From Octopus sinensis (Eukaryota): a stretch of 64,000 nucleotides of DNA. Numbering within the stretch: position 1 is the stretch's first letter; every line of letters begins with the position of its first letter. A program made the translations under genes and the position numbers. Positions 1 through 62,625 of the stretch are shown here, one piece after another. The stretch is taken from positions 6,014,001 through 6,078,000 of the forward strand of contig NC_043010.1 in assembly GCF_006345805.1 (NCBI RefSeq). The letters run 5' to 3'. The notes below the pieces were generated by a model, which ran no database searches, was not told the origin of the DNA, and worked only from the letters and a program-made list of their open reading frames with translations.

Positions 1-247
1 TTTATCAATACAATAAATGAGATTAAATAGGAACCAAATAATTGGGTTGATTTACTGTAAATTAAAATCTAAAAAACAGAATCTGAAAACTAACAGAAAC
101 TAATGAATGAAACATTATTGATGCGTGTTCTACTATGAAATGAAATATTGTTTTGTTATTAATATTTTCTTTTAATGTATTCCTTACTGAAATTGTATTG
201 CCTGTCTTGAGAAAATAATGCTTTGTTATGTTCTTGAAATTATGCTA

Positions 248-3200: not shown

Positions 3201-4731
3201 ATATCTGAAATGGTAGAATATCTTTTCCATTAGATAATAGAGAATAGGTTAATTGTCCTCCATCTCCAATATCTGGGTCTGTGGCATTGACATAGCCAAC
3301 AGGGAAGTCTTTGTGTTCATTTTCATAGGTGAGAAACTTAAATATGTCCTGACTAAACTGAGGTTGTACATCATTTATGTCAGTGACCAGCACAGAAAAC
3401 TGTTTCTCTACTTTCAATGGAGGTAAACCATTATCTTGACATTTAATGGTGAAATTAAAGCTCTTCTCACTCTCTCTATCTATTTCACTCTTGACAACAA
3501 CTTTGTAATTCTTTTCAGACTCTGCGATAAGCTGAAGATATCTATTTTGTAAATGACACTTCACTTGTCCATTTTTTCCACTGTCATTGTCAATAGCATT
3601 GACAAAAGCAACAAAACTGTGAATTAAAGTTCCTTCTGAGATGACTGCTGTGTTTCCAGTCGACTTGAAGACAAATTTGACATCAATTTTGGGAGGATTG
3701 TTAAGATGACTGATTCCAGTTACAAGAACAGTTGCAGTTGAGGACATTGGTGGGTTACCATTATCCCTTGCTTCAACAAACAATTTATATATCCTTCCAA
3801 ATTGAAATTCTTTCTTCAGAAACAAATATCCAGTTACTTCATCTAATCTGAAAAACTGTTCAGTATATTTTGATGTTATGGCATTGAAAAAATAAGATAT
3901 TAATCCATTTTCTCCTTCATCTAAATCCGTAGCCAACAGCTTTGCAATCGGTTTGTTTAACTGGTGTGTGTCATTTACAGTGACATTATAAGTATTTTGA
4001 GAGAACACAGGGAAATTATCATTAATATCTTTAATAATTATTTTTATATGAAGTACACCTTCTTTCTGTGGTGACCCATTATCTCTGGCAATAAGCTGAA
4101 TATCGTAAATGCTTTTTGTCTCACGATCTAAGACATTTTCAAGGTTTAGTTGCAATAAATCAGATCCATCCAATTTTTTAGAAACAATCAATTTAAAAGG
4201 AGTATTTAAATTTTCAATCTCATATGTAATTTTGGAATTCTGAATACTGACATCATTATCAATGGCATTTGGAATTATATGCCTGGTTCCTATTAGAACG
4301 CTTTCATCAAATTTTAAATGAAATTCCTTTTTTGGAAACTTTGGAGAATTATCATTAACATCTTCTATTATAACTTTGAGTTTTAATATCTTAATAACAG
4401 AATAGCCATGTTGAACAGTTATTTCCAATATTCTGAAACATTCCACATTATATTGACACAGAATTTCTGCATCCAATATGGCAGCAGTGTACAAGTGTCC
4501 TCCCTGTGTAACATTAAATAACTGGTCTGTTTCATCAGAACTTCTCTGAAGTACATTAAACATCAGTTTGCTGTTATCGTCAAGAGATGGTACAGTATCC
4601 AATAAGTGTGTATCAGTGACAATATCTCCAATAAAGCTGTGTATATCATTGTTCTCTTTCACATGGTAGGTATGATCCACACACCAACAATTGTTAACCA
4701 TTAACAACACCAACCAAAGTATGTATAACAT
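248..4731 (-). CDS. Pcdh: Protocadherin gene 1 (6 EC + TM + cytoplasmic tail), about 956 aa; coding exons 4731-2344, 1329-1179, 579-248
   Basis: Signal peptide, EC1 C-X5-C motif (LCQYNVEC), DxNDN/DRE/DxD cadherin motifs and a hydrophobic TM helix. Donor CAG|GTAAAT at 2344/2343; 151-nt exon TAG|ATT...CCAG|GTAAGA; acceptor TTTAG|ATCTG at 579. Phases 0 and 1 keep the frame open to the stop at 248. Symbol is family-level only. Confidence 0.93.
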
Positions 4732-6720
4732 GGTTACAGTCTACAATTCTGTTACAAGGAAATATATGTATAATGTTATTGAAACCTATGAAATAATGAC
4801 TTCTGGAATATTTTCTTCTGTTATCACCTGTAAACATATGAAACATAAAAGCTAATTATGCATTAACAAAGATGAAGTAATCTAGAAAATTCACATCACT
4901 GAAAACTGGTAGCAATACAAAATTTTACCAACATATTACAAGGTACGCAAAAAAAATCTACATTATCGTTCCATTCTTTATCTTTATATGCATTTGATAG
5001 AATTTAAAGTTATTTTCCTCCTACACATTTAAGTTATGTTTTAGTGTGAAAAAATATTACATCAATTGTATAATCTCACCCTTGTAACAAACATTTCTTA
5101 AATTTTCATCATTTCAAGATCCTAATTTATACTTCAAATAAAAGAAGGAAGCATATTAACATATGTTTGACTGGTCTACATCTGTTAATTTATCTTCAAT
5201 TCTCATTTTGTGTACTAAGAAATGAAGCCTACACTGACAATTAATGAACCTTTTCCAAATATCAGTCAAATCTCCCTCAAATCACAAACTATCATAATAT
5301 TTAAGAAGGGGACATATTGGATAATGTATATCAAAGTCCAGCATGGCACAAGACAAGAAGATATGATTATTATGGTTAGAACTGCCTTTGATTATTGATC
5401 TATCCAATTAGAAACAACAGGAGATTTAAATTTTGATTGGCAGTCAAGTAATATATGATTAGCTTTTCCACTGAAATCATGTTTCTATACATTATCCACA
5501 ATCAGTCTGATTAATAAATGATAAAAGCATTTTTCAGCAATAAATTCATAATCACATTATGATAAGCAGTAAGTTTTGTAGTCTGAAGAATATCCAGTTC
5601 AGCTTTTCAGCAATTTGCTGTAGAAAGAAAAACTTAATTTTTGTTGTAACATTCTAAAAGCACAATATGCTATGGGGTTTACTTTTTCTGTGGCCGTGTG
5701 TTTACCGTTGGCTATTTTCTTTCTCCGTCTTCCCTTCCTTGGACCTTTCCTTTTTCTATGTTTCTGATGAAGAGCTCCGCTTGAAATGTTGAATACTCCA
5801 TCTTTCATTTCTTTCCTAAGTGTCGAAGAACTCTGTACTTGTTCCACGTCCTCGCGTTGATGTCTTTTCTCTTTATTCATTTTTGGAGTAACTATATATA
5901 TATATATATATACACAAATAGAAATTTCTATCGGTTTGTTTTGAGACGCATAAATTATAATGGTTATTGACAATTTTTGTCTTTTTTTCGGTATATTTGG
6001 CATTAGAATTTTTCTTTTGCCCTTATTTTTGTACATTATTTATAAATTTAACCTTTAAAGGTATTTTTTGATATGCTGGCCAGTGGTGTTGTTTAACTGA
6101 ATAGCATCTTTGTTCTCCATCATCCCATAACTAAACTCAATACTCAATATGCATCAGGAAGACAAGTTGAAATGAATGTTCCTGAGTCACAATCTGTAAT
6201 TCACTATTTGATGAAAAGGAAGTAAAAGATAAAACTAACAGAACACTAACTAAAGGAGTTGTTGCCCTTTGATTCTGACCTAAAAATAACAAAAAACAAA
6301 TAATGTCTGCCTAACAGTCTAAGCTGAACAAAATAATTTCCTTCATCACATCTCCCTTCTAATTACTAATATTTAGCATCATTCTCACATTAAACATTTG
6401 CCAATCTAATCACAATTAAACAATCAGTAATTTAGTGATTCCCTGGAACAGTAAAATTACAAATTTTAAAATTTAGTAAAATTATATCTTTCCTAAAATT
6501 TACCATTCTAGACGGTCTTTGAGAAATAATATTTATATTTTAGATTTGATGAATGGAAATCATGACAAGGTACAAATATCTGTGAAAAATTCTAACAATA
6601 AGTAAACTTACTCTATTTTTACATCCTGTCTGTAACAGTAGAATGAACTTTTGATTAAATAAAAGATTTGAAAAATATACAAAAGATTACACAACAGAAT
6701 AAGTTCTAATAAGTACTTAC

Positions 6721-6960
6721 CAACAGGTATCAGTTATTTATATAGTTGTTGCTGTGCTGTTTCAGGGTTTTGGTAACAAAGTTATATCAGTAGCAGAAGT
6801 TCTGAGTAGTTTGGTATGTGACAGTGTTATGTAGTTCTATGGAGTTGGTTGTGTAGTGTGTAATGTGTGTTGTAGCCAATGACAAGCTGTCTTTTATTCC
6901 AGTGCAAGGAAACGGAAATACAGCCTCCAACTTTTGCAGTTAATGATGGACTGACTCACA
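6721..6960 (-). promoter_or_regulatory. Conserved promoter cassette + non-coding leader exon of gene 1 (donor GTTG|GTAAGT at 6721/6720)
   Basis: Plus strand reads agCCAATgacaagctgtcttttattccagtgcaaGGAAacGGAAatacagcctccaacttttgcagt...TGACTCA (6952-6958). The same block recurs upstream of all six genes and ends in a consensus 5' splice site. TSS not determinable. Confidence 0.8.
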
Positions 6961-8025
6961 GACTGGTTTACTTAACCCACACCCACTTACATATATATGT
7001 GAATGTGTGTTAGTACATAAATGAATAAGGAAGAAATGTCTAATGACTAGAATGAAGTGGACAGGCAATAAATTCAGTATGGAAAATATTGATTCAAAAT
7101 AATGTTAATATAAATGTGTAAAAGTATAAGGAACCTAACTTTAGTAACTTTATGTTACAAACTGCACATAACTCTCAGAAAAGTTATCATGGAACCAAAA
7201 TAAAATTGATTCATATAAAAAATAAATATTTGGAAATATTATTATATTAATACAATAAAACAGCAGTTGAATCATAGAGAAAATTTTTTTAGAAAATACG
7301 AAACTAAGGCTATCAATAAACTTATTTCTGTTCAGCAGAAATGTGTGAAGTAAAACACTGAAGAACAGCAGAATAAGAGAATGAGCAGAAAGAATGATAT
7401 TTACCAAACCTTTTGCATTTGTTAGGTTAAAGGGGTTTACTTCATTTTGGATTTCATAGATTTCCTCAGAATTAATAATAATAATATTGAAGAATTTCAT
7501 AAAGAACAGAAGTGGAAGGCAACTACTAATAGATATAACTTCTACAAACTACCATAGTAAAATATTCTGTAAATCTCAGATTTTCTAACAAAACATTAAC
7601 ATCTTGGAGCCTTCGGAGTGAACACTGATAGCATTACACAATATAAATATAAGATTATTAAGATTTTGCTATTTCAGAAATGGATTTGCAGAGAAGTTAG
7701 AATGTTGAATAAAATGTTTGCCGTATTTAGTTACAAATTATTATGCACTGTGCTAAAATTGCTCTGAGATTAGATTTATTTTATCAATACAATAAATGAA
7801 ATTAAATACAAACCAAATAATTCGGTTGATTTACTGTAAATTAAAATCTAAAAACAGAATCTGAAAACTAACAGAAACTAATGAATGAAACATTATTGAT
7901 GCGTGTTCTACTATGAAATGAAATATTGTTTTGTTATTAATATTTTCTTTTAATGTATTCCTTACTGGAAATGTATTGCCTGTCTTGAGAAAATAATGCT
8001 TTGTTATGTTCTTGAAATGATGCTA

Positions 8026-11000
8026 TTAGACGTCTGTTGCAGACAGAGGAGGGAGTGGAGGTACCTGGGGTGATGAAGGTACCTTTGGTAGTGTTGTTAT
8101 TTTGGGTACAGCTGGCAGAGATGGTTTACAGTCTGAAGTAAACTGACTTTTCACTGGTACTGTAGAATGTTGTCCAGTTATGTTAGATGTGGTCCCAGTA
8201 ATAGTCAAAGGTGTTTGGTCAATCGAACAGGAAGTGTTATTATCGACATTAGGGTGATGGTGATATCCATATTTGTTATCTCCCCTTGATCTGTTGAGTG
8301 TGTTTTGAAGTTGATTTCTTCTATTCCATGTCTGGTCACTTTGGTAACGACACAGATCTAGAAAAAATATTAAGATTTTATATAAATTTATTTGCAATAA
8401 AAAAATTAAGCATTTGTTTCATGCATAAAATTATCCCAAATCTATGCAGGTTTACTCAAAACTTTGAATTTTTAATGAACAACTTGATAATTTATTGATA
8501 ATGAAGAATTTAATTAAATTCAGATGTTTTTCATTTTAACATTCTCATTTTTAATTAGGGATTAGTCTTCAGAAGGAGTTTTGGAAGAATAATATATGTG
8601 AATAAATTTCACGAGAACATTATATATATTGAATAGCTTGACCTATATCTTTTTAAAGATTTGCAAATGGACACTAATCATTAATTTATAATTAAATTTT
8701 AGTCGTGTATCTATGGAGATTGGTGGAATGAAAGCTTCCTAACTTGAAAATTAATGAATGGGTGAACAACAGAAAGAGCCACGAGGTGTAAAGCATTGCC
8801 TTAATATTTTACTCATCTGATTCATGCTAACATACGCAAAATGAATGTAAAACGAATGAACAAACTAGATATGTATTATTATATCATTAGGAAATATAAT
8901 ATTAAATTTAAAAGTTTCTTACATCTGAAGAAATTCTTGGTATTTTTATCTTACCTGGCAGTTCCTCATAATGTCCAGCACTACCAACACTCCAGCCATG
9001 ACCACTATCAGTGTGAGATGACAATGTTGACATCTCACTGAATTGGTCAGGATTGTTCAGTTCTCTGTAACCTGGAGACATACTTTCCTCTCTGGGAATA
9101 AAAATCTATAAATATAAACCCAATGGATCATCAAGATGTTCTGAACGTTCAAAAAAAGAAATATATCTCAAAGATTTAGACAATTCTAAGGAACCTTCAG
9201 TTGGGATGTTCATTTCTAATCATTGTATACTTTAAATTCTAAACTTTCTGAAGTCTTCAAGTAATTTCCTAGAAAGATGACCTCAAAACATCAGTCAGAA
9301 TATATATATAGGTAATCTTTAGTATATTTATTTACTCTGTCTCCAGGATATCTTAATCATCGCCATCTCAGAGTGCTATGACTTTTGAGTTTATAATATT
9401 CAAAGAAGCTTCAATTAGAAAGAAATAATCATATATTAATTTAGTTGCTCCAGTAAGCTAAGGATATGAACAATAACAAGCAGAGGTAATAATTCAATAT
9501 GAAATCAGCAGTCGAGTTTCAAACTAACTTTTCAAATTGTATCTGACAGTTTATTAGTATTACCCTAGTAACATAGGAAAACTATTCTACAGGTGAAAAT
9601 AGCAGACCTGTTTTATTCATGTCTAATGATGACTGCAATTGTACAGATAAGATTAGCAAGTGTCTAAAATACTGTGTATATAACATTCCTCCAACCATAA
9701 AGATTGTACATGTCAATAAATATTTGTTACTTCTTAATTCCCTATGCAGCATTCAGAAGATATTCTTCTAGGAATACCCAAAATTGAAAATAATGCAAAA
9801 ATACATTTGGAAAAGATTGATGAACAATAAAGGGAATGATTTAAAGGTAAAATAGTGAGAGTGGTCATCATCATCTTTTAACATCAGTTCTCCATGCTGA
9901 CATGGGATGGAGAGTAGGACAGGAGTTAGCTAGCCTTAGAGCTGTTCATGCTTCATCTCCCTATTTTTCTATAGTTTCTATGAAGAGACGACCATCGTAA
10001 CACCAACCACTTAACATGGTGGGTGCTTTTATACGGCCCCAACATGGGAACTGTTACGTAAAACCTCTATAGGCAATTTTACATGAAGCATGCAACAGCC
10101 ATTTTTTCCTTGATATTTCAAATAAATATAAGCAATTTACCTGTTCATGTCTGTTCAAAGTAAAATCGTTCCACTTATCACATGGCAAGGTTCTGCAGTA
10201 AGTATCTTCCCTATAAACCTTTGAGTCTTGAGATGGCTTCAGTTTTCTCGACATTGTGTACTGAACTCCAGGAGGAACACAGGTAGGATCAAATATATAT
10301 TTCGATTGCGTGTTTAATGCAGGTGTAACCTTGTGGTACATATCAACACTGTTGTTATAGTTGTTGTCTGTCTGATTCAGTCTATGAACTATACAGATCG
10401 ATATAGAGATCACTATGACAACTGATACGATCACAGCTGCTATAACAATAACAATCATCACATTCAATTGGAGACCATTACTTGATTCTGTTGTTGTCTT
10501 TGAAGGGGTCTTAAATATCTTTGATGTGTTCTTACTAACTGTGAGAGTCAAAGACAAAGTTGTTGTCGATGACAGAACTGGACTGCCACTGTCTTTCACA
10601 CCTAATTCCAGTTCATAGAATCCAGCATCATTTTGGTAAAGTGAGCGAGAGAAAGATAAGACACCAGAGTGATGGTTCATTTGAAATAAGTGTTTCTCAT
10701 TACCTCTGAGTATTTCATATGTGAGGAAGGCATTGTGTTGACTGTCTCTGTCAGAGGCCCTAACAACTGTGATATCATGGTCAGAGTGGGGATGGTAGTG
10801 GACATTAAGACTGAAAGGGTCAACATTAGGGAAACTGAAATAGGGAGCATTATCATTTAAATCCATAACCTCAACAACAACATTTGCTCTCTTCTCCAGT
10901 GATGGTGTTCCTTTATCTTTTACTAAAACCTTAAACTCATACAAGTTCTTTTCTTCTCTGTCTAGGGACTCAGTTGTGGAAATGAATCCCACATCAGATA

Positions 11001-12528
11001 TCTGAAATGGTAGAATATCTTTTCCATTAGATAATAGAGAATAGGTTAATTGTCCTCCATCTCCAATATCTGGGTCTGTGGCATTGACATATCCAACAGG
11101 GAAGTCTTTGTGTTCATTTTCATAGGTGAGAAACTTAAATATGTCCTGACTAAACTGAGGTTGTACATCATTTATGTCAGTAACCAGCATTGAAAACTGT
11201 TTCTCTACTTTCAATGGAGGTAAACCCTTATCTTGACATTTAATGGTGAAATTAAAGCTCTTTTCTCTTTCTCTGTCTATTTTACTCTTGACAACAACTT
11301 TGTATTTCTTTTCAGACTCTGAGATTAGCTGAAGATATCTATTTTGTAAATGACACTTCACTTGTCCATTTTCTCCATTGTCATTGTCAATAACATTGAC
11401 ATAAGCAACAAAACTCTGAATTTGTGTTCCTTCAGAGATGACAGCTTTTTTTCCAGTTGACTTAACAAAAAATTTGAAGTCAATGTTTGGTGGATTATTC
11501 AAATGAGTGACACCATTTATAAGGACAATGGCTGTTGAAAACATAGGTATTTTACCATTATCTCTAGCTTCAACAAGCAATTTATATATCCTTCCAAATT
11601 GAAATTCTTTCTTTAGAAACAAATATCCAGTTACTTCATCTAATCTGAAACACTTCATGGCATATGTTGATGTTTTGCTATTGAAGACGTAAGATATTAA
11701 TCCATTTTCTCCTTCATCTAAATCTGTAGCCAACAGCTTTGCAATAGGTTTGTTTAACTGGTGTGTGTCATTTACAGTGACATTATAAGTATTTTGGGAG
11801 AACACAGGGAAATTATCATTAATATCTTTAATAATTATTTTTATATGAAGTACACCTTTTTTCTGTGGTGATCCATTATCTCTGGCATTTAGCTGAATTT
11901 CATAAATGCTTTTTGTCTCACGATCTAAGATATTTTCTAGATTGAGTTGCAATAAATCAGATCCATCCAATTTTTTAGAAACAATCAATTTAAAAGGAGT
12001 ATTTAAATTTTCAATCTCATATGTGATTCTGGAATTCTGAATACTGACATCATTATCAATGGCATTTGGAATTATTTGCTTGGTTCCTATTAGATCATTT
12101 TCATCAAATTTTAAATGAAATTCCTTTTTTGGAAATTTGGGGGAATTATCATTAACATCTTCTATTATAACTTTGAGTTTTAATATCTTAATAACAGAAT
12201 AGCCATGTTGAACAGTTATTTCCAATATTCTGAAACATTCCACATTATATTGACACAGAATTTCTGCATCCAATATGGCAGCAGTGTACAGTTGTCCTCC
12301 CTGTGTAACATTAAATAACTGAGCTGTTTCATCACTACTTCCCTGAACAACATTAAACATCAGTTTGCTGTTATCGTCAAGAGATGGTACAGTATCCAAT
12401 AAGTGTGTATCAGTGACAATATCTCCAATAAAGCTGTGTATATCATTGTTCTCTTTCACATGGTAGGTATGATCCACACACCAACAATTGTTAACCATTA
12501 ACAACACCAACCAAAGTATGTATAACAT
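8026..12528 (-). CDS. Pcdh: Protocadherin gene 2, about 956 aa; coding exons 12528-10141, 9105-8955, 8357-8026
   Basis: Close paralog of gene 1 with the same exon sizes (2388/151/332 nt), canonical GT-AG sites and an open frame. Confidence 0.93.
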
Positions 12529-12919
12529 GGTTACAGTCTACAATTCTGTTACAAGGAAATATATGTATAATGTTATTGAAACCTATGAAATAATGACTTC
12601 TGGAATATTTTCTTCTGTTATCACCTGTAAACATATGAAACATAAAAGCTAATTATGCATTAACAAAGATGAAGTGATCTAGAAAATTCACATCACTGAA
12701 AACTGGTAGCAATACAAAATTTTACCAACATATTGCAAGGTGTGTCAAAAAATCTACATTATCATTCCATTCTGTCTATTTATATGCATTTGATAGAATT
12801 TTATGACATTTTCCTCCTACACAAATAATTTACGTTTTGGTGTGTAAAAATGTTACATCAATTGTATCATCTCTTTTCTTAAATTTTCAGCACTTCAAGA
12901 ACCTAATTTTGAATTCCTC

Positions 12920-14560: not shown

Positions 14561-15225
14561 TAACACATTCACTCTTTTACAATATTAATACTCCCCAACC
14601 ATTTTATTCCTAAAGTTATTAAGTTGCAGACTTTTAAAATGGGTCTCTGATTCATTGATATGGTTCGTTTCTAAGAGTCACAGTTACTGAGCCACATTCT
14701 GTAATTAACTATTCAATGAAAAGAAAGAAAAAGATAAATAATAACAGAACTTTAACTAAATGAGTTGTTGCCCTTTGATCCTGATAAAAAAAAAAAAGAT
14801 GTCTAACAGTCAAAGCTGAAGAATTAAATTTCTTCATCACATATACCTTCTAATTACTAATATTTAACATTTTTGTTATATTTAACATCGTTTTTCCATT
14901 AAACATTAGACATTCTAATCACAAACATTCAGTAATTTAGTGATTCACTGGAACAGTAAAATAAGAAATTTTAAAATTTAGTAAAATTATATCTTTCCTA
15001 AAATTTACCATTCTAGACGGTCTTTGAGAAATAATATTTATATTTTAGATTTGATGAATGGAAATCATGACAAGGTACAAATATCTGTGAAAAATTCTAA
15101 CAATAAGTAAACTTACTCTATTTTTACATCCTGTCTGTAACAGTAGAATGAACTTTTGATTAAATAAAAGATTTGAAAAATATACAAAAGATTACACAAC
15201 AGAATAAGTTCTAATAAGTACTTAC

Positions 15226-15465
15226 CAACAGGTATCAGTTATTTATATAGTTGTTGCTGTGCTGTTTCAGGGTTTTGGTAACAAAGTTATATCAGTAGCA
15301 GAAGTTCTGAGTAGTTTGGTATGTGACAGTGTTATGTAGTTCTATGGAGTTGGTTGTGTAGTATGTAATGTGTGTTGTAGCCAATGACAAGCTGTCTTTT
15401 ATTCCAGTGCAAGGAAACGGAAATACAGCCTCCAACTTTTGCAGTTAATGATGGACTGACTCACA
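15226..15465 (-). promoter_or_regulatory. Conserved promoter cassette + leader exon of gene 2
   Basis: Same block: CCAAT at ~15381, TGACTCA at 15457-15463, donor at 15226/15225. Confidence 0.8.
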
Positions 15466-16530
15466 GACTGGTTTACTTAACCCACACCCACTTACATATA
15501 TATATGTGAATGTGTGTTGGTACATAAATGAATAAGGAAGAAATGTCTAATGACTAGAAGGAAGTGGACAGGCAATAAATTCAGTATGGAAAATATTGAT
15601 TCAAAATAATGTTAATATAAATGTGTAAAAGTATAAGGAACCTAACTTTAGTAACTTTATGTTACAAACTGCACATAACTCTCAAAAAAGTTATCATGGA
15701 ACCAAGATAAAATTAATTCACATAAAAAATAAATATTTGGAAATATTATTATATTAATACAATAAAACAGCAGTGGAGTCACAAAGATAACATTTTAGAA
15801 AATACGAAACTATGGCTATCAATAAACTTGTTTATGTTCAGTAGAAATGTGTGAAGTAGAATACTGAAGAATAGCAGAATAAGAGAATGAGCAGAAAGAA
15901 TGATATTTACCAAACCTTTTGCATTTGTTAGGTTAAAGGGGTTTACTTCATTTTGGATTTCATATATTTCCTCAGAATTAATAATAATAATATTGAAGAA
16001 TTTCACAAAGAACAGAAGTGGAAGGCAACTACTAATAGAAATAACTTCTACAAACTACCATAGTAAAATATTCTGTAAATCTCAGATTTTCTAACAAAAC
16101 ATTAACATCTTGGAGCCTTCAAAGTGAACACTGATAGCATTACAGAATATAAATATAAGATTCTTAAGATTTACTATTTCAGAAATGGATTTGCAGAGAA
16201 GTTAGGATGTTGTATAAAATGTTTGCCGTATTTAGGTACAAATTATTATGCACTGTGCTAAAATTGCTATGAGATTAGATTTATTTTATCAATACAATAA
16301 ATGAGATTAAATACAAACCAAATAATTGGGTTGATTTACTGTAAATTAAAATCTAAAAACAGAATCTGAAAACTAACAGAAACTAATGAATGAAACATTA
16401 TTGATGCGTGTTCTACTATGAAATGAAATATTGTTTTGTTATTAATATTTTCTTTTAATGTATTCCTTACTGGAAATGTATTGCCTGTCTTGAAAAAATA
16501 CTGCTTTGCTATGTTCTTGAAATTATGCTA

Positions 16531-19500: not shown

Positions 19501-21554
19501 TTACTTGATTCTGTTGTTGTCTTTGAAGGGGTCTTAAATATCTTTGATGTGGTGTTACTAACTGTTAGAGTCAAAGACAAAGTTGTTGTCGATGACAGAA
19601 CTGGACTGCCACTGTCTTTCACACCTAATTCCAGTTCATAGAATCCAGCATCATTTTGGTAAAGTGAGCGAGAGAAAGATAAGACACCAGAGTGATGGTT
19701 CATTTGAAATAAGTGTTTCTCATTACCTCTGAGTATTTCATATGTGAGGAAGGCATTGTGTTGACTGTCTCTGTCAGAGGCCCTAACAACTGTGATATCA
19801 TGGTCAGAGTGGGGATGGTAGTGGACATTAAGAGTGAAAGGGTCAACATTAGGGAAACTGAAATAGGGAGCATTATCATTTAAATCCATAACCTCAACAA
19901 CAACATTTGCTCTCTTCTCCAGTGATGGTGTTCCTTTATCTTTTACTAAAACCTTAAACTCATACAAGTTCTTTTCTTCTCTGTCTAGGGACTCAGTTGT
20001 GGAAATGAATCCCACATCAGATATCTGAAATGGTAGAATATCTTTTCCATTAGATAATAGAGAATAGGTTAATTGTCCTCCATCTCCAATATCTGGGTCT
20101 GTGGCATTGACATATCCAACAGGGAAGTCTTTGTGTTCATTTTCATAGGTGAGAAACTTAAATATGTCCTGACTAAACTGAGGTTGTACATCATTTATGT
20201 CAGTAACCAGCATAGAAAACTGTTTCTCTACTTTCAATGGAGGTAAACCATTATCTTGACATTTAATGGTGAAATTAAATCTCTTCTCACTCTCTCTATC
20301 TATTTCACTCTTGACAACAACTTTGTATGTCTTTCCAGACATTGAAATAAGCTGAAGATATCTATTTTGTAAATGGCACTTCACTTGTCCATTTACTCCA
20401 TTGTCATTGTCAATAACTTTGACAAAAGCAACAAAACTGCCAATTTTAGATGCTTCTGAGATGACAGCTGTGTTTCCAGTTGACTTAATGACAAATTTGA
20501 AGTCAATGTTTGGTGGATTGTTAAGATGACTGACACCATTTACCAGAACAGTAGCTCTTGAAATTCTGCGAGGAATACCATTATCTTTGGCTTCAATAAA
20601 TAATTTATATAATTTTCCAAACTTATATTCTTTTGTCATAAATAATTCTCCAGTTACTTTATCTAATCTGAACAGAGTTTTAATCTTTTCTGGTGTTTTA
20701 GAACTGATTATGTATGAAATTCTCCCATTCTCTCCCTCATCCATGTCTGTAGCAGAAAAATTTAATATAGGTTTGTTTATTTGGTATGTATCATTTACAT
20801 TTATATTGTAGGTACTCTGAGAGAATACAGGTGAGTTATCATTTTTATCTTTCACTAAGATATTTATATCCATTACACCTTCCTTTGGTGGTGTTCCACC
20901 ATCTGTAGCAACTAGTTGGATATGATAATTAGATTTTGTCTCTCGGTCTAGATTCTTTTCCAGAACTAGCTCAAGTAAATTAGTTTCACTTAAATCTTGT
21001 GATAAGACCAATTTAAAAGGAATATCTTCATCCTCTTTCAATTTATAATTGATCTTTGTGTTCTGAATACTGACATCTTTGTCAATGGCATTTGGAAGTG
21101 TTTCTTTTCTTCCTTTTGCTGCACTTTCATCAAACTGTATATTAAATTCTTTGTTTGGGAAAATGGGAGAATTATCATTGGCATCTTCTATCATAACTTT
21201 GATTTCCAATATTTTGAGAAAAGAATGGCCATGCTGAACTGCGATTTCCAATACCCTGAAGCATACCACATTATATTGACAAAGAATTTCTGCATCCAAT
21301 ATGGCAGCTGTGTGCAGTTGTCCTCCAGGTGTAACATTAAACAACTGAACACTTCCATCTGTATTACCCTGAAGTACTTTAAATTTCAGTTTGTTGCTAT
21401 TATCCTGAGACTGTATATTATCCAGTAAGTGTGTATCAGTGACAATATCTCCAATATAACTGTTTAAATCATTGTTCTCTTTCACATGATAAATATGATC
21501 CACACACCAGGAGCTCTCAGCCATCAACAGCACCAACAATACCATTGACAACAT
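16531..21554 (-). CDS. Pcdh: Protocadherin gene 3, about 957 aa; coding exons 21554-19164, 17642-17492, 16862-16531
   Basis: Acceptor TTTCAG|ATT at 21588 places the likely start at ATG 21554 (MLSMVLLVLL signal peptide), not 21656. Donor CAG|GTGAGT at 19164; 151-nt exon; terminal exon nearly identical to those of genes 1 and 2. Confidence 0.92.
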
Positions 21555-21777
21555 GACTACAATCTTCAATTGTCTTTGATATATTAATCTGAAATGGAAA
21601 TAGATATATAGAGGATAACATCCAATATACAGAATATATCTAGATATTGCTTCCATACCAATACATCATAATTTATGTCAAAATATCAATTACCATCATT
21701 AAGTAGCATAAATTCTTGCAAAATTTTTTCTTATTGATCAGTGACAATGAGAATTGTGAAAATTTGATTACCAACTG

Positions 21778-22945: not shown

Positions 22946-24654
22946 TTTTTTTTTTTACTCTGCAAAGAGATAGACTTTTCATAACTTAGCACTAGACATG
23001 TAAACTTCAAGAGAAGAGTGGAAAATCATGTCTAAAAAGTTATTTTCTTTAAGTTGAATTAGCCCTTGAAAGAAGAAAATCAGGTATTTCAGTTGTGGGT
23101 TTGTACCATAGAAGCTGAAAGTGTTTGACTGTCAGTGTCTCCAAGTTTGAAAGAAGGAAGGAAGAATATTACATCCAAGCCAGAGACCTGAATTAAAAGC
23201 CCCTAACAGAGAATATATCACTGAAGACACATAAGCATCCGATAGCGATGTTATATAGACAGAAAAATATTTTGTAACTTTACTCTGTTACAGCTCATCT
23301 CTGGCAATAAAACAATGATTATGTATTGCCAGTGATCTTCTCTTGACAGGGCAACCAACAACATTGCTTTTACAAAAGGGACACTCCAACATTTGCCATG
23401 GGATTATGGATTTGCCAGAACTCTCCATGAGATACATTACTATTACAGAGATAATGAAAGTTGATATTTATGAGAATCCTCGATATTTTATATGGTTCTG
23501 TGATCCTATCGAGGATGTGCTAGCAACAGAACACAGCAATGAGTTCTACAAGTTTTAATCAGTACATGTCTTGCAAACAACTTGCATATGCAAGTGCTAC
23601 CAGTCATAAAACTCCACATACAGGAAGCCAGCTAGTGTATGGGGTCATCAGGAGAGAATGTACGCCGTTTCGGGGCCTACCTCTTGACATTATCATGAAG
23701 ACAGTCTTGTATTAAAATCAACCCATACATACTCTACATCCAAAGTAGCTGTTCAAACTGCTAGAAATAAGGGATAAATCAACCTCAAATTACATCCTAT
23801 CCTTTTGGAAATGGATTCATTGAGTAAGGTAGAACTGACTTTTCATAGCATAGGAATCAGGCAAAATGATCATAGCCAGAAGGCTTACTTGATGAGTAGT
23901 GACCTGGGTCTAAACAACAGTAACAAGACTAACACCTGAATTTCTTCCACAAATGAGTGAGTCCCAGGAGTCAATTTATCTGTTATGAATAGTTGACAAA
24001 TTTTCTTCAAATATCAGCTTGCCATTAAAAAAAAGGAACACATTACACAAAGTAGCCTTTGATATTACTAAAAAGATAAGATGACTATGGCTGCAATGAC
24101 TTTGATCATTGGATCTTTTCAGACAAGTTGACCAAGGGTTAAACTACAAGTTCAATAATTATTGCAAGATACTGATGAGAAATCAGAATAGCCTCCCTTG
24201 ATTATTAAAAGTCTACTTTTTCTACTCTGACCTCAGTTCCTGTATAGATGGAGTATTTTGAAGATAATATCCTACTTAACTTATACATAAAGGAAAAAAA
24301 TTAATCAAGATATTCTATTGTATACCATTTTCTTTGATTACAATAATATCCGATTATTAACCAGTTTGTTGACTCAGATAACAATATATATAAAAAAGAA
24401 TGATAGTAAAAAATATTGATGGTTTAAAGATGTTAAATATTTGAAAAAATAACAGAACTTATTTAAAAAGTTTTTTGTAGTGCTGGTATTTATATATACT
24501 ATAGTATGTGACAATTTAATTGTCTATTAAAGTGAGAGAATAGTATACAAGTTAACACATTGTCTGTTATTCAGAAAGTTATTTTATCAACATAAATAAC
24601 AGAGAGATTACCAAATGACTAAAATATAGATAAAAAGTTTTAATATATACTTAC

Positions 24655-24897
24655 CAACAGTTGTTATATATTCTTAAAGTTGTTACTGTACTGTTTAAAA
24701 GTTCTGGCATCAAAAAGTTGTAGTAGTAGCAGGAATTCTGAGCAGTTTGGTATGTAATAGTGCTATGTAGTTCTATGAAGTGGACTGTGTAGTATGTAAT
24801 GTGTGCTGTAGCCAATGACAAGCTGTCTTTTATTCCAGTGCAAGGAAACGGAAGTACAGCTTCCAGTTCTTGCAGTTAATAATGGGCTGACTCACAG
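24655..24897 (-). promoter_or_regulatory. Conserved promoter cassette + leader exon of gene 3
   Basis: Same block: agCCAATg at 24810, acGGAAGT, TGACTCA at 24888-24894, donor at 24655/24654. Confidence 0.8.
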
Positions 24898-25826
24898 ACT
24901 AGTTTACTTAAGCCCACACACATACATATACATATGTATGTGTTACAGAATGAATAAGGTAGAATATTTAATGTCTAGAAAACTGAGGCAAAGCAATAAA
25001 CTTATGAAAATATGATTAAATATTTAGTTTTCCAAGATTTAAAAAAAAATCTTTATATTATAAATTTGGTAAAAGTTAGAAAAGTTTCCAACATCAAAAG
25101 TTTAAAATTTTCAATAACCTTTATATACCAGCCATTATTTAGTAAAATTTTGGCAAAATTTATTAAAAAATCCCCTTAAATGCTTTTCAATATATTTAAC
25201 TCTTAATACTAATTTGAAAATACGAAATTATGGCTTTGAATTAGAGGCTCAACAATAATCAACATATGAAATGACTTTCTACACCTAAATGAATTTAGAT
25301 TTAGAAGCTTAAAATACTAATTTCAAAACAATAAGACTATATACATATTTGCATTATTTGTATGTTGTCTGTTACTATATATATATGTGTGTGTGTGTAT
25401 CACACAAGCTAACTGGACTAATAAAGAATATTTTATGATTATTGGAGGGGTTTTTTTTTTTAACAATTATCAAATAATCAACAACTGATTTAATTATTTG
25501 TTACATTTCGATAATTACTTTTTTCCTTACACTATATTAAAATATAGAAGCAAAGGTTTGTAGAAGTTTGAGGATCTTAGTGGACTTCAAAAACATTTTC
25601 TTATTTAGAATGACAGTCTTAAATATTTTCCTTCTTACAAAGAATTAAATTTATCATAGCTATTGCATATGACTGAAGAGAATGTAGCTATACAAAAACA
25701 ATATATATATTTATAACATTAATTACTATTTTACTTGTAAGATTTAATGAAATTTTATATTAATAGTTTTATGTATGAATTTGTGCATTGTTAGTAGTTA
25801 ATATTTGTTGGAGGCGCCTGATGTAT

Positions 25827-33100: not shown

Positions 33101-35408
33101 GAGATTTCTTCACATTTCTCTCCAATGTGTACTGAACTCCAGGAGGAACACAAGCAGGATAAAACATATATCTTGATTGCATATTTAATGCTGGTATAAC
33201 ACCATGGTACATATCAACACTACTATTATAGTTTCTATTTGTCTGCTTCAACCTATGAACTATACAGATTGATATAGAGATCACTATGACAACTGATACG
33301 ATCACAGCTGCTACAACAATAACAATCATCACATTCAATTGGAGACCATTACTTGATTCTGTTGTTGTCTTTGAAGGGGTCTTAAATATCTTTGATGTGT
33401 TCTTACTAACTGTGAGAGTCAAAGACAAAGTTGTTGTCGATGACAGAACTGGACTGCCACTGTCTTTCACACCTAATTCCAGTTCATAGAATCCAGCATC
33501 ATTTTGGTAAAGTGAGCGAGAGAAAGATAAGACACCAGAGTGATGGTTCATTTGAAATAAGTGTTTCTCATTACCTCTGAGTATTTCATATGTGAGGAAG
33601 GCATTGTGTTGGCTGTCTCTGTCAGAGGCCCTAACAACTGTGATATCCTGGTCAGAGTGGGGATGGTAGTGGACATTAAGACTGAAAGGGTCAACATTAG
33701 GGAAACTGAAATAGGGAGCATTATCATTTAAATCCATAACCTCAACAACAACATTTGCTCTCTTCTCCAGTGATGGTGTTCCTTTATCTTTTACTAAAAC
33801 CTTAAACTCATACAGGTTCTTTTCTTCTCTGTCTAGGGACTCAGTTGTGGAAATGAATCCCACATCAGATATCTGAAATGGTAGAATATCTTTTCCATTA
33901 GATAATAGAGAATAGGTTAATTGTCCTCCATCTCCAATATCTGGGTCTGTGGCATTGACATATCCAACAGGGAAGTCTTTGTGTTCATTTTCATAGGTGA
34001 GAAACTTAAATATGTCCTGACTAAACTGAGGTTGTACATCATTTATGTCAGTGACCAGCATAGAAAACTGTTTCTCTACTTTCAATGGAGGTAAACCATT
34101 ATCTTGACATTTAATGGTGAAATTAAAGCTCTTCTCACTCTCTCTATCTATTTCACTCTTGACAATAATTTTGTATTTCTTTTCAGACTCTGAGATTAGC
34201 TGAAGATATCTATTTTGTAAATGACATTTCACTTGTCCATTTTCTCCACTGTCATTGTCGGTAACTTTGACATAAGCAACAAAACTTTGATTTTGAGTTC
34301 CTTCTGAGATGACAGCTGTGTTTCCAGTTGACTTTATAACAAATTTAACATCAATTTTGGGAGGATTGTTAAGATGACTGACACCATTTATAAAAACTGT
34401 GACTGTTGATGACATAGGTGGTTTACCATTATCTCTGGCATCAATAAATATCTCGTAAATCTCACCAAAATTAAATTCTTTCTTCAAAAATAGCTCCCCT
34501 GTTGCCTCCTCTAATTTAAAGCTTTCTTTTATCCTTTTAGGTGTTTTAACATTATTAAAGACATAAGAAATTCTTCCATTTTCCCCTTTATCTAAGTCTG
34601 ATGCAGAGACCTTAACAAGAGGCTTGCTTCTCTGGTATGTATCATTTATAGTGACATTGTAAATATTCTGGGAGAAAACAGGAAAATTATCATTTTTATC
34701 TCCCACTAATATTTTTATATCCAATACACCTTCCTTTGGTGGTGTTCCTTGATCTTTGGCAATTAACTGAATATTGTACATATCTTTTGTCTCACGGTCT
34801 AAGGAACCTTCTAAAATTAGTTGCAATAAATCAGTTCCACGTGACTTAGAAACAACCAATTGAAAAGGAACATTTTCATTTTCCTTCAGTTGATAATTGA
34901 GTTTAGAATTCCGAGAGCTAATATCGTTATCAATCGCATTTGGAATGATTTCTTTGATTCCTTTGGTCACACTTTCATCAAATGACACTTGAAATTCCTT
35001 ATTTGGAAATATAGGAGAATTATCATTGACATCTTCTATTATAACTTTGACTTCTAATATCTTGATAACAGAATGGCCATGTTGAACTGCTACTTCCAAA
35101 ATCCTGAAGCATTCCACATTGTATTGGCACAATGTTTCTGCATCCAATATGGCAGCTGTGTACAGTTGTCCTCCAGGTGTAACATTAAACAACTGAACAC
35201 TTCCATCAGTACTACCCTGGAGTATTTTAAATGTCAGTTTGCTTCTATCATCTTGAGTCTGTATATCATCCAGTAAGTGCATATCAGTGACAATATCTCC
35301 AATATAATTGTTTATATCATTGTTCTCTTTCATGCGGTAGATATGATACGCACACCAGCAGCTTTCAGTCATTAACAACACCAACAGTATCACTGATAAC
35401 ATCTTCAT
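30139..35408 (-). CDS. Pcdh: Protocadherin gene 4, about 960 aa; coding exons 35408-33012, 32502-32352, 30473-30139
   Basis: Acceptor TTTCAG|ATT at 35427. The ORF-track start at 35426 is TTG; the first ATG is at 35408 (MKMLSVILLVLL). Donors CAG|GTGAGA and CAG|GTTAGT; acceptor TTCCAG|GT at 30473; frame open. Confidence 0.92.
31660..32323 (+). mobile_element. CR1/L2-clade LINE 3' fragment with (ATT)n tail
   Basis: Translates RPHLEFASPVWNPYLAQDINHLEAIQ...YSERL...FRKHFFTLRVAEAWNKL, with stops, and ends in attattatt. Confidence 0.8.
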
Positions 35409-35684
35409 TAGTATAGGATTTGCCAATCTGAAATAAAATGCTAAATTGTATATAAATCATTCCCTGATATCTAGTGATTAACAATTCGAGTAGCTAACTC
35501 ATAATCATCTCAAAACATTATGTAAGTAATATCAAATAGCAATCAGTGATTTGGATATTAACTACTTTATTTGACCAATAATGTGTCTCAAATTCTAGCT
35601 TAAACAAATAAAGAACTTGACAGCTGTATTATACATTAGATGTTCATAAGTGTATTATTGCAACATTCACTCTCCTCTAGTATA

Positions 35685-40878: not shown

Positions 40879-41074
40879 TGTCCCCCTAGCATTGCTTGAC
40901 AACCGATGCTGGTGTGTTTATGTTCCCGTTACTTAGCAGTTCGGCAAAAGAGACCAATAGAATAAGTACTGGGCTTACAAAAAGAATAAGTCCTGGAGTC
41001 GAGTTGCTCGATTAAAGGCGGTGCTCCAGCATGGCTGCAGTCAAATGACTGAAACAAGTAAAAGAGTAAAGAGT
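40879..41074 (+). mobile_element. SINE family A, 3' half
   Basis: Matches the 3' half of 41176-41608. Confidence 0.75.
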
Positions 41075-41608: not shown

Positions 41609-41713
41609 TACTTTTTTACTAATATTCTTTTTCTCCAAATGATAAACTGAGAAATATTACTAAATGTTTAAATCACAAATATACACAAGAAATAGCTTGT
41701 AACGAATACTTAC

Positions 41714-41905
41714 CAACAGTTGTCTGTTGTTTAAGCAGTTGTTACTGTTGCAGCTGGAGTTCCGAGCAGTTTGATGTGTGAAAGTATTAAGTAGTTCTAC
41801 CAAGTTCGTTGTGTAGTATGTAATATGTGTCGTAGCCAATGACAAGCTGTCTATTATTCCAATGCAAGGAAACAGAAATACAACCTCCAGTTCTTGCAGT
41901 AAATG
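41714..41905 (-). promoter_or_regulatory. Conserved promoter cassette + leader exon of gene 4 (about 35 nt shorter, TGACTCA lost)
   Basis: agCCAATgacaagctgtc...ttCCAATgcaaggaaac from 41834; donor at 41714/41713. Confidence 0.78.
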
Positions 41906-42046
41906 ATAGGCTGTCCACATACACTTACGTATCCGTGTTGTAGGTGTATATAAAATGTACGTAAATGAACAGTGAAGAACGATGGTTAGCTAGAATTTCA
42001 AGGATAGGCAATAAATTCTGTTTCGTTAATAGTATTGAATATATAT

Positions 42047-51000: not shown

Positions 51001-51851
51001 TCTATCATAATTTTGATTTCTAATATCTTGAGAAAAGAATGATCATGGTGAACTGCTATTTCCAATATCCTGAAACATTCCACATTATATTGACACAGGG
51101 TTTCTGCATCCAATATAGCAGCTGTGTGCAGTTGTCCTCCAGGTGTAACATTATACAACTGAACACTTCCGTCGGTACCACCCTGGAGTATATTAAATGT
51201 CAGTTTGTTGTTATCATCTTGAGACTGTATATCATCCAATAAGTGTGTATCAGTGATAATATCTCCAATAAAGCTGTGTATATCATTGTTCTCTTTCACA
51301 TGGTAGGTATGATCCACACACCGGCAACAATCAGCCATCAACAACATCAACAATATTAAGGTAAACATCTCTTTAATTTTCTTCAATATATTCCACTGGT
51401 CTGAAATGGATATGTACATAGGAAATAGATATGGTTATACTCTTCTGATATAATTATATAAAAATAAATTATGCATACTGTAGTAAGGTCAAAGTAATCT
51501 TAACATTAAAAACAATTACAGAATATATTAACACTTTGAATATAATTATGATAATATAGAAGCTACAGTATAGAATACTGTTAATTACAGTTAATGTTAT
51601 GCAGTGGGAAAGAAATTGAAGTCCCATGGTCAAGAATTGAACTTGTTAACTATACAGTTATGCCTGCACCTACATTAAGCTTGCATACTCATTGCACAAT
51701 CTATAAATATTCTGTATTTTCCATTATTCATTAGTTAGTGTAGGGATGTCTAAAAACATGCATGCACACACAGTTTAAAATATAAGCATATAATCTTGCT
51801 TTGAAATGGAACTTAAGGAATCTAACAGAATTTCTCTGCAGTATGGTATAA

Positions 51852-52936: not shown

Positions 52937-54223
52937 CAGGTAAGGGTGAGTAGTTAAGAAGTTGGCTTCCCACCCACACGGTTTCAGGGTTAGTCTTACA
53001 ATATGACACGTAGGGAAAGTATCTTTTAATAAAGTCTAAGGCCAACCAAAACCTTGTGAGTGAATTTAGTAGACATCACCATCATCATCATCGTTTAACG
53101 TCCGCTTTCCATGCTAGCATGGGTGGGACGATTTTGACTGAGGGCTGGCAAACCAGATGGCTGCACCAGACTCGAATCTTGATCTGGCAGAGTTTCTACA
53201 GCTGGATGCCCTTCCTAATGCCAACCACTCCGAGAGTGTAGTGGGTGCTAAGAAAGAAACCTGTCCTATGTTTGTGAGTGTGTGTGTGTGAGTGTCTCCT
53301 GGTGTTGCCAACACTTGATTCTTGCAGATGAAGGTTATTTAGTTACCATATTCTGCAAAAACATGTCTGGCCTTGGGAAAATATCGCCTTGCCTAGAAAC
53401 GGATAATGGTTAGCAACAGGAAGGGTGCCCAGTCGGAGGAAAATCTGCTTAATTGCAATCTATCTGAACCATGCAAGCATAATAAAAAAGATCTTAATGA
53501 TGGTAATGACAATAAAGATGATGATTGTGGGTGGGGAAGGGGGGGTGTTTAGAAAAAATAAAAATTAAGAAATTCACAGTCTCGTCCTAAACCATAATCT
53601 TGACCCTTGAATAAAATTTTCTTGGTGGTTCAAGATTGTAAGACTTGTCCCAAAAAAGTTTACGAAATAATTTACTTTGCATCGTGAAATTTTTCTATTT
53701 ATTTTTTTCGAAAGCACTAATTTGTACCGAATTTACTATTTCACTAAGAATAGCCTCCCTTGTTCCCAGCTTATTTACACTCTGTTCTAATAATAGAATA
53801 TGATGAAAATAAGACATATCAAATTTACAATGCAGCATGGAAATTCGATTATCAAGTATATATATATATATATATCTTATGATATCCTATTATTTTACGT
53901 TAACATCCTGACTAAATATGGTGCACAATATTATAAAGATATTTTGAAAATTATAATTATTAAATACATCTGTAAGTGATAAAGTTCTACATCAGAATAT
54001 TTCTTAACACCAACGTTATATATTTGTAATAGGTAAAGCAGGTGACAAGGAAAATTAAGTCTTTACTTAAATAACATGAGGATGTGGAAGTCACTAAACT
54101 TATTTTTATTGTTGTTTCTTGGAGAGAGAGAGACAGATAGACAGAGAGAGAGAAAGAAAGAGAGTGTTATAAATGTCTAAATAAATTATTTAAGGATAAC
54201 AGAAGCTTTTAAGAAATACTTAC

Positions 54224-54470
54224 CAAGTTGCTTATACTTCTGCCAGTTGCTTCTACAGTTGTAACTGTATTGTTCCAGTGTTCTGGTAACGAAGTTGTAA
54301 TAATAGTAGGAGCTTGGTATGTGACACACACTGTTACATAGTTCTATGAAGTTGGTTGTGTAGTATGTAATGTGTGTTGTGGCCAATGACAAGCTGTCTT
54401 TTATTCCAATGCAAGGAAACGGAAATATAGCCTCCAACTTTTGCAGTTAATGATGGGCTGACTCACAGAC
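54224..54470 (-). promoter_or_regulatory. Conserved promoter cassette + leader exon of gene 5
   Basis: ggCCAATgacaagctg from 54381, TGACTCA at 54459-54465, donor at 54224/54223. Confidence 0.78.
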
Positions 54471-58900: not shown

Positions 58901-60719
58901 ATGTGAGGAAGGCATTGTGTTGGCTGTCTCTGTCAGAGGCCCTAACAACTGTGATATCCTGGTCAGAGTGGGGATGGTAGTGGACATTAAGACTGAAAGG
59001 GTCAACATTAGGGAAACTGAAATAGGGAGCATTATCATTTAAATCCATAACCTCAACAACAACATTTGCTCTCTTCTCCAGTGATGGTGTTCCTTTATCT
59101 TTTACTAAAACCTTAAACTCATACAGGTTCTTTTCTTCTCTGTCTAGGGACTCAGTTGTGGAAATGAATCCCACATCAGATATCTGAAATGGTAGAATAT
59201 CTTTTCCATTAGATAATAGAGAATAGGTTAATTGTCCTCCGTCTCCAATATCTGGGTCTGTGGCATTGACATATCCAACAGGGAAGTCTTTGTGTTCATT
59301 TTCATAGGTGAGAAACTTAAATATGTCCTGACTAAACTGAGGTTGTACATCATTTATGTCAGTAACCAGCACAGAAAACTGTTTCTCTACTTTCAATGGA
59401 GGTAAACCATTATCTTGACATTTAATGGTGAAATTAAAGCTCTTTTCTCTTTCTCTATCTATTTCACTCTTGACAACAACTTTGTATTTCTTTTCAGACA
59501 CTGAGATTAGCTGAAGATATCTGTTTTGTAAATGACACTTCACTTGTCCATTTTTTCCACCGTCATTGTCGGTAACTTTGACATAAGCAACAAAACTGCC
59601 AATTTTAGATGCTTCTGAGATGAAAGCTGTGTTTCCAGTTGACTTTATAACAAATTTGATATCAATGTTTGGTGGATTGTTAATGTGACTGATTCCATTT
59701 ATTAGAATGGGAACTGTTGAAGACATTGAAGGAATACCATTATCTCTGGCTTCAACAAATAATTTATAAATTCTTCCAAACTGAAATTTTTGCTTCAGAA
59801 ACAACTCTCCTGTTGCTTCATCCAACTTAAAGCATTCTTTTATTTTATTTGGTGTTTTGGCATTACTAAAGATATAAGAAATTCTTCCACTTTCTCCTTC
59901 ATCTAAATCTGTTGCAGACAACCTCAGAATAGGTTTGTTTATTCTGTGCGTACCATTTACAGTAACATTGTAGATATTTTGCGAGAAAACAGGGGAGTTA
60001 TCATTTTTATCTTCTACCAATATTTGTATATGAAATATACTTTCCTTTGGTGGTGATCCTCCATCTCTGGCAATTAATAGTATATTATATACATCTTTTT
60101 TCTCACGATCCAAGTTACTTTCCAAAATTAGTTGTAATAAATCAATTCCATCTGATTTCTTAGAAACAAACAATTTGAAAGGAATATCTTCATCTGCTTT
60201 CAGTTGATAAGAGAGTTTAGAATTCTGAACACTGAAATCTTTGTCAATAGCATTGGGAAGTGTTTCTGTCGTTCCTATCAAATCATTTTCATCAAATTGT
60301 ATTTTAAGTTCCTTTTTTGGAAATATAGGATAATTATCATTGACATCTTCTATCATAACTTTGATTTCTAATATCTTCATAAAAGAATGGCCTTCTTGAA
60401 CTGCTATTTCCAATATCCTGAAACATTCCACATTATACTGACAAAGAATTTCTGCATCCAATATGGAAGCTGTGTACAGTTGTCCTCCAGGTGTAACATT
60501 AAACAACTGAACACTTCCGTCAGTAACACCCTGGATAACATTAAATGTCAGTTTGTCGCTGTTATCCTGGGACTGTATATTATCCATTAAGTGTGTATCA
60601 GTGACAATATCTCCAATATAACTGTGTACATCATTGTTCTCTTTCACATGGTAGGTATGGTCCACACAAAGGCAGCTCTCAGCCAACAACAACAGCATCA
60701 ACATTAATACTGGAAACAT
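55998..60719 (-). CDS. Pcdh: Protocadherin gene 6, about 943 aa; coding exons 60719-58344, 56748-56598, 56302-55998
   Basis: Acceptor TTTCAG|ATT at 60726, ATG at 60719, donor CAG|GTAAAA at 58344, a 151-nt exon and a terminal exon starting DLCRYQ; frame open. Confidence 0.92.
56925..57140 (+). mobile_element. SINE-like family C (related: head at ~26503-26575, minus-strand copy at ~36130-36310)
   Basis: Shared gagctggcagaa head and gcctttcatcctttc.gggtcgataaattaagtacc core across the copies. Confidence 0.55.
57753..58151 (+). mobile_element. SINE family A, full copy
   Basis: Same head, body and tail. Confidence 0.8.
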
Positions 60720-62383: not shown

Positions 62384-62625
62384 CAACAGTTGTCAGTTGT
62401 TTATATTGTTCTTAATGAACTTTTTCAATGTTCTGGCAACACAAAGTTTTAATAGTGGCAGAAGTTCTGAGTAGTTTGGTATGTAATAGTTTTATATAGT
62501 TCTATCAAGTTGGTTGTGTAGTGTGTAATGTGTGTTGTAGCCAATGACAAGCTGTCTTTTATTCCAATGCAGGGAAACGGAAATACAGCCTCCAACTTTT
62601 GCAGTAAATGATGGGCAGACTCACA
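62384..62625 (-). promoter_or_regulatory. Conserved promoter cassette + leader exon of gene 6
   Basis: agCCAATgacaagctg from 62539; donor at 62384/62383. Confidence 0.8.

Follow-up and report, generated by a model that had tools for sequence, protein, structure and literature searches.

The window analysed in this work, a stretch of 64,000 nucleotides of Octopus sinensis chromosome CM016872.1 (positions 6,014,001–6,078,000), carries six genes of the protocadherin (Pcdh) family of neuronal adhesion proteins, all encoded by the minus strand, and one truncated copy. The genes were recognized as six minus-strand ORFs of 659 to 850 amino acids with cadherin repeats, whose top protein matches are Octopus protocadherins. 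Their ATG codons (genes 1 to 6, minus strand) are found at positions 4731, 12528, 21554, 35402, 51368 and 60719. Mapping of the gene 2 protein (XP_036365089.1, 956 aa; coding part 8026..12528, minus strand) onto the window defined an organization of three coding exons per gene of ~2.4 kb, 150 nt and 330 nt. In gene 2 the large exon runs on the minus strand from 12528 to ~10138 (aa 1–797) and is followed by the exons 9105–8956 (aa 797–846) and 8358–8026 (aa 847–956 and the stop codon). The two 3′ coding exons are private to each gene and shared constant exons are absent, which agrees with Albertin et al. 2022 (PMC9068888), where the PCDH arrays of cephalopods are described as same-orientation duplications of complete multi-exon genes, accompanied by gene conversion.

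Several public gene models, including those of genes 1 and 3, look wrong. Gene 1 is represented by a 746-aa protein (XP_036365088.1), yet its intact ORF begins at 4731, and gene 3 is part of a fused protein of 6653 residues. A further gene model (P0019, locus L005) stretches over 94 kb and reaches the next gene. The large exon of gene 5 (49075–51368, minus strand) is broken into two overlapping frame pieces around 49476–49533. The ORF of this gene has only 659 aa because of this frameshift, which is either the mark of a pseudogene or an assembly error. The truncated seventh copy (25809–28197, minus strand) retains both small 3′ exons and the final ~340 nt of the large one.

The 3′ half of the large exon is 98–100% identical among all six paralogs, and 99–100% identical among paralogs of Argonauta, but the same segment is only 82–92% identical between Octopus and Argonauta. 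The near-identical segments of the window lie at 2835–3134, 10632–10931, 19655–19954, 33503–33802, 49469–49768 and 58814–59113, and include ~800 nt more around each of them. The region coding the outer cadherin domains is 63–78% identical. This distribution of identity is the signature of concerted evolution by gene conversion, with the recognition domains diversifying alongside, as in vertebrate Pcdh clusters.

A non-coding block of ~250 bp, named here the cassette, is found once per intact gene, on the gene strand and 1.7–6.3 kb upstream of the ATG (6/6 genes). An earlier note on this DNA had described it as present once per gene at 2–6 kb from the ATG, which agrees well with these distances. 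An HMM built from the six aligned blocks of the window gave exactly six matches in the 64 kb, one for each gene, all in the minus strand and with E values between 1e-66 and 1e-97. The 12-mer GTCATTGGCYAC occurs six times in the window while 0.44 occurrences are expected. When dispersed repeats are set aside, a self-BLAST of the window leaves nothing common to at least four units other than the three coding exons and the cassette. The DNA around them has therefore diverged, as the earlier note had held. No cassette was detected by the HMM scan at the 5′-truncated copy 25809–28197, nor an N-terminal part by protein mapping; this copy is probably a pseudogene left by unequal crossover or deletion.

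The six cassettes, all in minus-strand orientation, are positioned at 6714..6963 (gene 1; conserved core 6867–6963), 15219..15468 (gene 2; core 15372–15468), 24648..24899 (gene 3; core 24803–24899), 41707..41916 (gene 4; core 41827–41916), 54217..54470 (gene 5; core 54374–54470) and 62377..62628 (gene 6; core ~62532–62628). The positions 6721, 15226, 24655, 41714, 54224 and 62384, by which the blocks had originally been designated, are in every case exactly the last putative exon base preceding the GT of a minus-strand TTG|GTAAGTA sequence. In gene 1 the donor GTAAGTA occupies 6714–6720. The cassette of gene 3 is orthologous to a copy from O. bimaculoides (L003:6586–6867).

The cassette is not particular to the window. 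All genes of the subfamily inspected in O. vulgaris (two genes), O. bimaculoides (three) and the paper nautilus Argonauta hians (four) also have it upstream, without exception on the strand of the gene. Another O. sinensis locus, ~80–100 kb outside the window, served as an out-of-sample test: of its two subfamily genes, one has a cassette 2.2 kb and the other 8.4 kb upstream of the ATG, and no further cassette is present. The total amounts to 17 cassettes for 17 gene 5′ regions in four species (six in the window and 11 more).

Read on the gene strand, the block is composed of three parts: a 97-bp core, an A+C-rich stretch and a splice donor. The core spans from GTCTGTGAGTCAGCCC to GTCATTGGCTACAACAC and contains TGAGTCA, TAACTG, the paired ETS core TTCCGTTTCC (complement GGAAACGGAA, or ACGGAAGT in several copies), the inverted repeat GACAGCTTGTC and ATTGG (complement AGCCAATGA). 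The latter belongs to an NF-Y-type CCAAT box with RRCCAATSR flanks whose sequence GTCATTGGC (= GCCAATGAC) is exact in 17/17 copies of the four species. In gene 1 these motifs are found at 6952–6958 (TGAGTCA), 6908–6917 (TTCCGTTTCC) and 6876–6880 (CCAAT, plus strand). TGACTCA is perfect in four of the six window copies, the count given previously, and GGAAACGGAA is present in five. In gene 6 the sequence TGAGTCT replaces TGAGTCA, while in gene 4 the 5′ end of the core including this site is deleted and the putative leader stretch is shortened to 113 nt. In genes 1 to 6 the CCAAT is separated from the exon end by 155, 155, 157, 122, 159 and 157 nt, respectively. The pattern of a nearly constant spacing with a shorter gene 4 thus stands, with its values of 153–157 and 120 nt revised to 155–159 and 122 nt.

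The A+C-rich stretch is 113–181 nt long and maintains its G-poor composition (7–14% G) in spite of its lower conservation. Three Argonauta copies have insertions of (TAC)n microsatellites, differing in length, in their putative leader (L004, positions 7050–7150, 14990–15080 and 23260–23350). The leader part therefore tolerates length change; the core and the donor do not. The donor 10-mer TTGGTAAGTA (TTG|GTAAGTA) is invariant in all 17 copies from the four species. Identity drops to alignment noise directly upstream of the core and directly downstream of the donor. A TATA-like sequence, TATATAAA or TATAAAC, was noted 17–24 nt upstream of the donor in ~9 of 15 copies, including all four from Argonauta (6737–6744 in the window). 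A TATA-driven start through TATATAAA was not accepted: the sequence sits too near the donor to serve the leader exon as a promoter TATA, is missing from some copies and agrees poorly with the promoter and leader model given below.

Two other identities for the block were examined and discarded. No conserved reading frame is present, as stop codons were found in all six frames when the core consensus was translated by hand, ruling out a coding exon. The putative leaders have 0–2 ATGs each. The block matches no Rfam family at gathering score, and on either strand it folds less stably than shuffled controls (z-scores +2.6 and +2.8), so a structured non-coding RNA was rejected.

The core is 92% identical among old Octopus paralogs, i.e., those whose introns no longer align, and 87% identical between Octopus and Argonauta; the leader identity in the same two comparisons is 72% and 53%. 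The flanks reach 38–50%, which is alignment noise. Conservation no higher than that of the neighbouring sequence, on which the earlier note had let its proposal depend, is thus not what was observed. The core conservation equals that of the best half of the coding exon (82–92% for Octopus versus Argonauta). As judged from this alignment, the cassette is under constraint, being alike in Octopus and Argonauta while its flanks are not. The comparison between O. sinensis and O. bimaculoides does not bear on this point because the introns of their orthologs are still ~90–94% identical, a pair too close to test constraint. Gene conversion, acting at the adjacent coding exon, may account for part of the similarity between paralogs instead of selection. 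Two observations speak against homogenization: orthologous cassettes keep their own lineage-specific substitutions, as seen for gene 3 and its O. bimaculoides counterpart, and the comparison with Argonauta independently supports constraint.

The distribution of the cassette among protocadherins is narrow. It is restricted to a single subfamily with amino-acid identities of at least 70%, of which O. sinensis has at least eight genes and the truncated copy. The cassette was absent from a 114-kb O. sinensis locus whose two Pcdh genes are ~53% identical, from a further O. sinensis Pcdh locus, from an O. vulgaris locus, from an Argonauta locus of another subfamily and from a cuttlefish locus; two of these cassette-free loci sit on the same O. 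sinensis chromosome as the window. Because of this restriction, the statement that the cassette precedes every protocadherin is too broad: it holds for the genes of this sub-array, the truncated seventh copy excepted, but not for the other Pcdh subfamilies sampled. No analogous conserved block proper to the other Pcdh loci was found in a thin sampling. The upstream block shared at L008, a candidate for such an element, turned out to be a SINE and is the sole block shared there, the paralogs at L009 are too recent to be informative, and the upstream region of the L010 gene has only dispersed repeats in common with other loci.

Repeats are indeed frequent in the region. One SINE-like family is found in the window at 40880–41066, 46098–46285, 55684–55870 and 57957–58143; a second one at 22633–22805 and 53074–53249 has many further occurrences in the other octopus Pcdh loci L005, L008 and L010. 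Retroelement ORF fragments (43372–44404, minus strand) are located between the gene 4 cassette and the 3′ end of gene 5, within a stretch of unusual base skew; a GIY-YIG endonuclease domain of the type seen in Penelope-like elements was recognized in one of them (E 2.5e-8). The abundance of SINE-like sequences could suggest that the block is itself a dispersed repeat or transposon fragment lying near genes by chance, an outcome that the earlier note had considered damaging if copies were found away from Pcdh genes. However, the HMM gave no match, even at E ≤ 10, in ~250 kb of other cephalopod Pcdh loci (L005, L007–L010), where genuine SINEs recur tens of times. Moreover, each of the 17 copies lies at the 5′ end of a gene, with orientation and placement alike in all of them, and the block is conserved between Octopus and Argonauta. 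A chance repeat is, on this evidence, scarcely credible.

The donor at the end of the cassette has a counterpart in front of each coding region. A polypyrimidine-CAG acceptor (YTTTCAG) is found 7–34 nt before the ATG in the six window genes, and a similar one in most orthologous genes of the three other species (up to ~60 nt from the ATG in one O. vulgaris gene). In gene 1 (4731..4773, minus strand) the predicted acceptor reads ccttgtaacag|AATTGTAGACTGTAACC followed by the ATG at 4731; exon 2 would start at 4748 (predicted intron 6720–4749, minus strand), or at 4740 if the second AG is used. For the other minus-strand genes, exon 2 is predicted to start at 12545 in gene 2 (acceptor region 12528..12570, ATG 12528, predicted intron 15225–12546), at 21588 in gene 3 (21554..21613, ccatttcag|ATTAAT, ATG 21554), at 35427 in gene 4 (35402..35452, ttttatttcag|ATTGGC, ATG 35402, predicted intron of 6.3 kb at 41713–35428), at 51400 in gene 5 (51368..51425, ccatttcag|ACCAGT, ATG 51368) and at 60726 in gene 6 (60719..60751, atatttcag|ATTCAAA, ATG 60719). 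The acceptor position led to correction of the gene 3 start codon to 21554 from the ATG of the ORF list (21656), the same arrangement as in O. bimaculoides. Annotated proteins of the subfamily begin with a signal peptide at the exon 2 ATG. An acceptor before the ATG requires an upstream exon, and the invariant donor of the cassette is its obvious partner. Since an acceptor shortly before the ATG is also found in other cephalopod Pcdh subfamilies, a spliced non-coding leader is probably general among cephalopod Pcdh genes.

Transcript collections added little to this picture. A protein search with the N-terminal 132 aa returned no transcript contigs of the subfamily, the protein clusters of the subfamily hold genome-derived entries only and no Logan transcript assemblies, and the one Logan transcript recovered (L006), from a decapodiform Pcdh, is without the cassette.

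We consider it likely that the block is the proximal promoter and non-coding first exon of the protocadherin gene that follows it on the minus strand. The motif-rich core, the variable stretch, the consensus donor and the matching acceptor before the ATG are the anatomy expected for such a unit and support this part of the earlier proposal. Recurrence, position, strand, conservation pattern, motif and splice-site matches, lack of an ORF or RNA structure and subfamily restriction are direct observations on the block, from which we infer promoter activity, the bound factors, the start site and the splice. The 97-bp core would act as promoter, with candidate binders proposed from consensus sequences only: a bZIP/AP-1-type factor (TGAGTCA), an ETS factor (GGAAACGGAA or ACGGAAGT) and NF-Y (AGCCAATGA), whose putative sites adjoin the inverted repeat GACAGCTTGTC. 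A CCAAT box is usually found ~60–100 nt upstream of the transcription start. Based on this usual spacing, RNA polymerase II would probably start some tens of bases downstream of the CCAAT, within the A+C-rich, G-poor stretch; as the CCAAT is 122–195 nt upstream of the donor, such a start would fit inside the block. The resulting leader of roughly 60–110 nt would end at TTG|GTAAGTA and be spliced over an intron of 1.7–8.4 kb to the YTTTCAG acceptor 7–34 nt before the ATG. The cassette would be common to the paralogs because tandem duplication copied whole transcription units, cassette included, after which purifying selection would have preserved the core and the splice site and left intron and intergenic DNA to decay.

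The donor and acceptor fit equally well a different arrangement in which the whole ~250-nt block is a 5′ UTR exon, the promoter lies further upstream and the core is kept for translation control or mRNA localization. This is unlikely. Conservation ends sharply at the 5′ edge of the core, with nothing conserved upstream, and no acceptor-like polypyrimidine tract is found at this edge. The invariant positions form DNA-binding consensus sequences that are palindromic or independent of orientation (TGAGTCA, CCAAT with NF-Y flanks, CGGAAGT), and the RNA is less structured than its shuffled versions. A role as enhancer, silencer or insulator-type element, with the GTAAGT kept, for example, for U1 snRNP recruitment, is still less probable, and so is a reading of the block as the point where an independent non-coding transcript begins. 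Enhancers, too, can contain clusters of AP-1, ETS and CCAAT motifs, but the block is strictly one per gene, invariably upstream and on the gene strand, its perfect donor provides a partner for the acceptor before each ATG, which would otherwise be an orphan, and the truncated gene is without it.

A proximal promoter with a leader exon places the octopus element close to two familiar gene organizations. Reverse-orientation CCAAT boxes are common in NF-Y promoters, and the cassette resembles TATA-less promoters of this class by its NF-Y-favoured flanks (AGCCAATGA), its reverse CCAAT and the nearby ETS and AP-1-like consensus sites; its factors are candidates named from consensus matches. It also resembles tandem families that keep a homologous promoter and 5′ UTR exon, where the unit comprises promoter, leader exon, intron and coding exons and, as in tandem families generally, selection keeps only the functional pieces. 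Unlike the promoters usual in such families, the core is as deeply conserved as the coding sequence across the Octopus–Argonauta split.

The third comparison is with the vertebrate clustered Pcdh genes, whose variable-exon promoters carry a conserved sequence element (CSE) bound by CTCF. Both systems have a short conserved non-coding element before every member of a tandem array of genes in the same orientation, and in both, gene conversion homogenizes parts of the coding exons, with the outer cadherin domains becoming diverse. The octopus sequence is not homologous to the CSE and has neither a CTCF-like motif nor a CGCT core: the 97-bp core consensus has a single CG and no CGCT, and the CTCF-type sequence CCASYAGRKGGCR, allowing up to two mismatches, has nine matches in the window versus 7.1 expected, none of them in a cassette. 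The description of the cassettes as free of CTCF motifs was therefore correct for all of them. The octopus element is 1.7–8.4 kb and an intron away from the ATG, whereas the vertebrate promoter directly abuts its variable exon, and the octopus genes own their 3′ exons whereas vertebrate variable exons are spliced to shared constant exons (PMC9068888 for cephalopods). The resemblance to the vertebrate CSE is positional; the defining features that were compared differ.

The earlier note had gone further and proposed that the block is a shared module by which paralogs would compete for common factors or an enhancer. The outcome would be stochastic or mutually exclusive expression, in a CTCF-independent analogue of the CSE. 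Near-identical cores before at least eight paralogs in the same orientation in one array, the absence of a CTCF-like motif and an exon diversified in its extracellular-domain half and homogenized in the rest, as in vertebrate clusters, are in line with this idea. We nevertheless regard it as doubtful. The 64 kb showed no distal conserved element, shared descent alone accounts for the sharing of the block, and the cassette was not found at the other Pcdh subfamilies sampled. Octopus single-cell data describe broadly expressed as well as cell-type-enriched PCDHs, about 19 per cell, and give no evidence of stochastic choice (PMC9712504). The cassette, being subfamily-specific and explained by whole-gene duplication, is thus by itself no proof of a vertebrate-like choice. 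An equally speculative version, to which we would give little credit at present, is that the core might be a dedicated AP-1/ETS/NF-Y switch, nearly unchanged since the ancestor of Octopus and Argonauta, that chooses paralogs individually, either stochastically or by activity. If true, such a switch, operating by competition for factors or for a distal enhancer, would be a convergent and CTCF-independent counterpart of vertebrate Pcdh promoter choice.

In the searchable literature we found no account of a promoter or leader element of protocadherins in cephalopods; the cephalopod Pcdh papers searched cover gene numbers, clustering, gene conversion and expression, with no promoter element. The cassette appears to be newly described, although as a kind of gene feature it is fairly ordinary, if useful. 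Its HMM marks the 5′ ends of the genes of the sub-array, several of which have truncated or fused models, and together with the acceptor it could help to correct the 5′ ends of those misannotated models. It also predicts start sites and splice junctions to be looked for in RNA-seq data and provides a sequence for ATAC footprinting and reporter assays. Cephalopods have roughly 170 independently expanded protocadherin genes, and the precisely bounded and deeply conserved 97-bp core, with its defined putative leader exon, offers a concrete handle on the regulation of this family.
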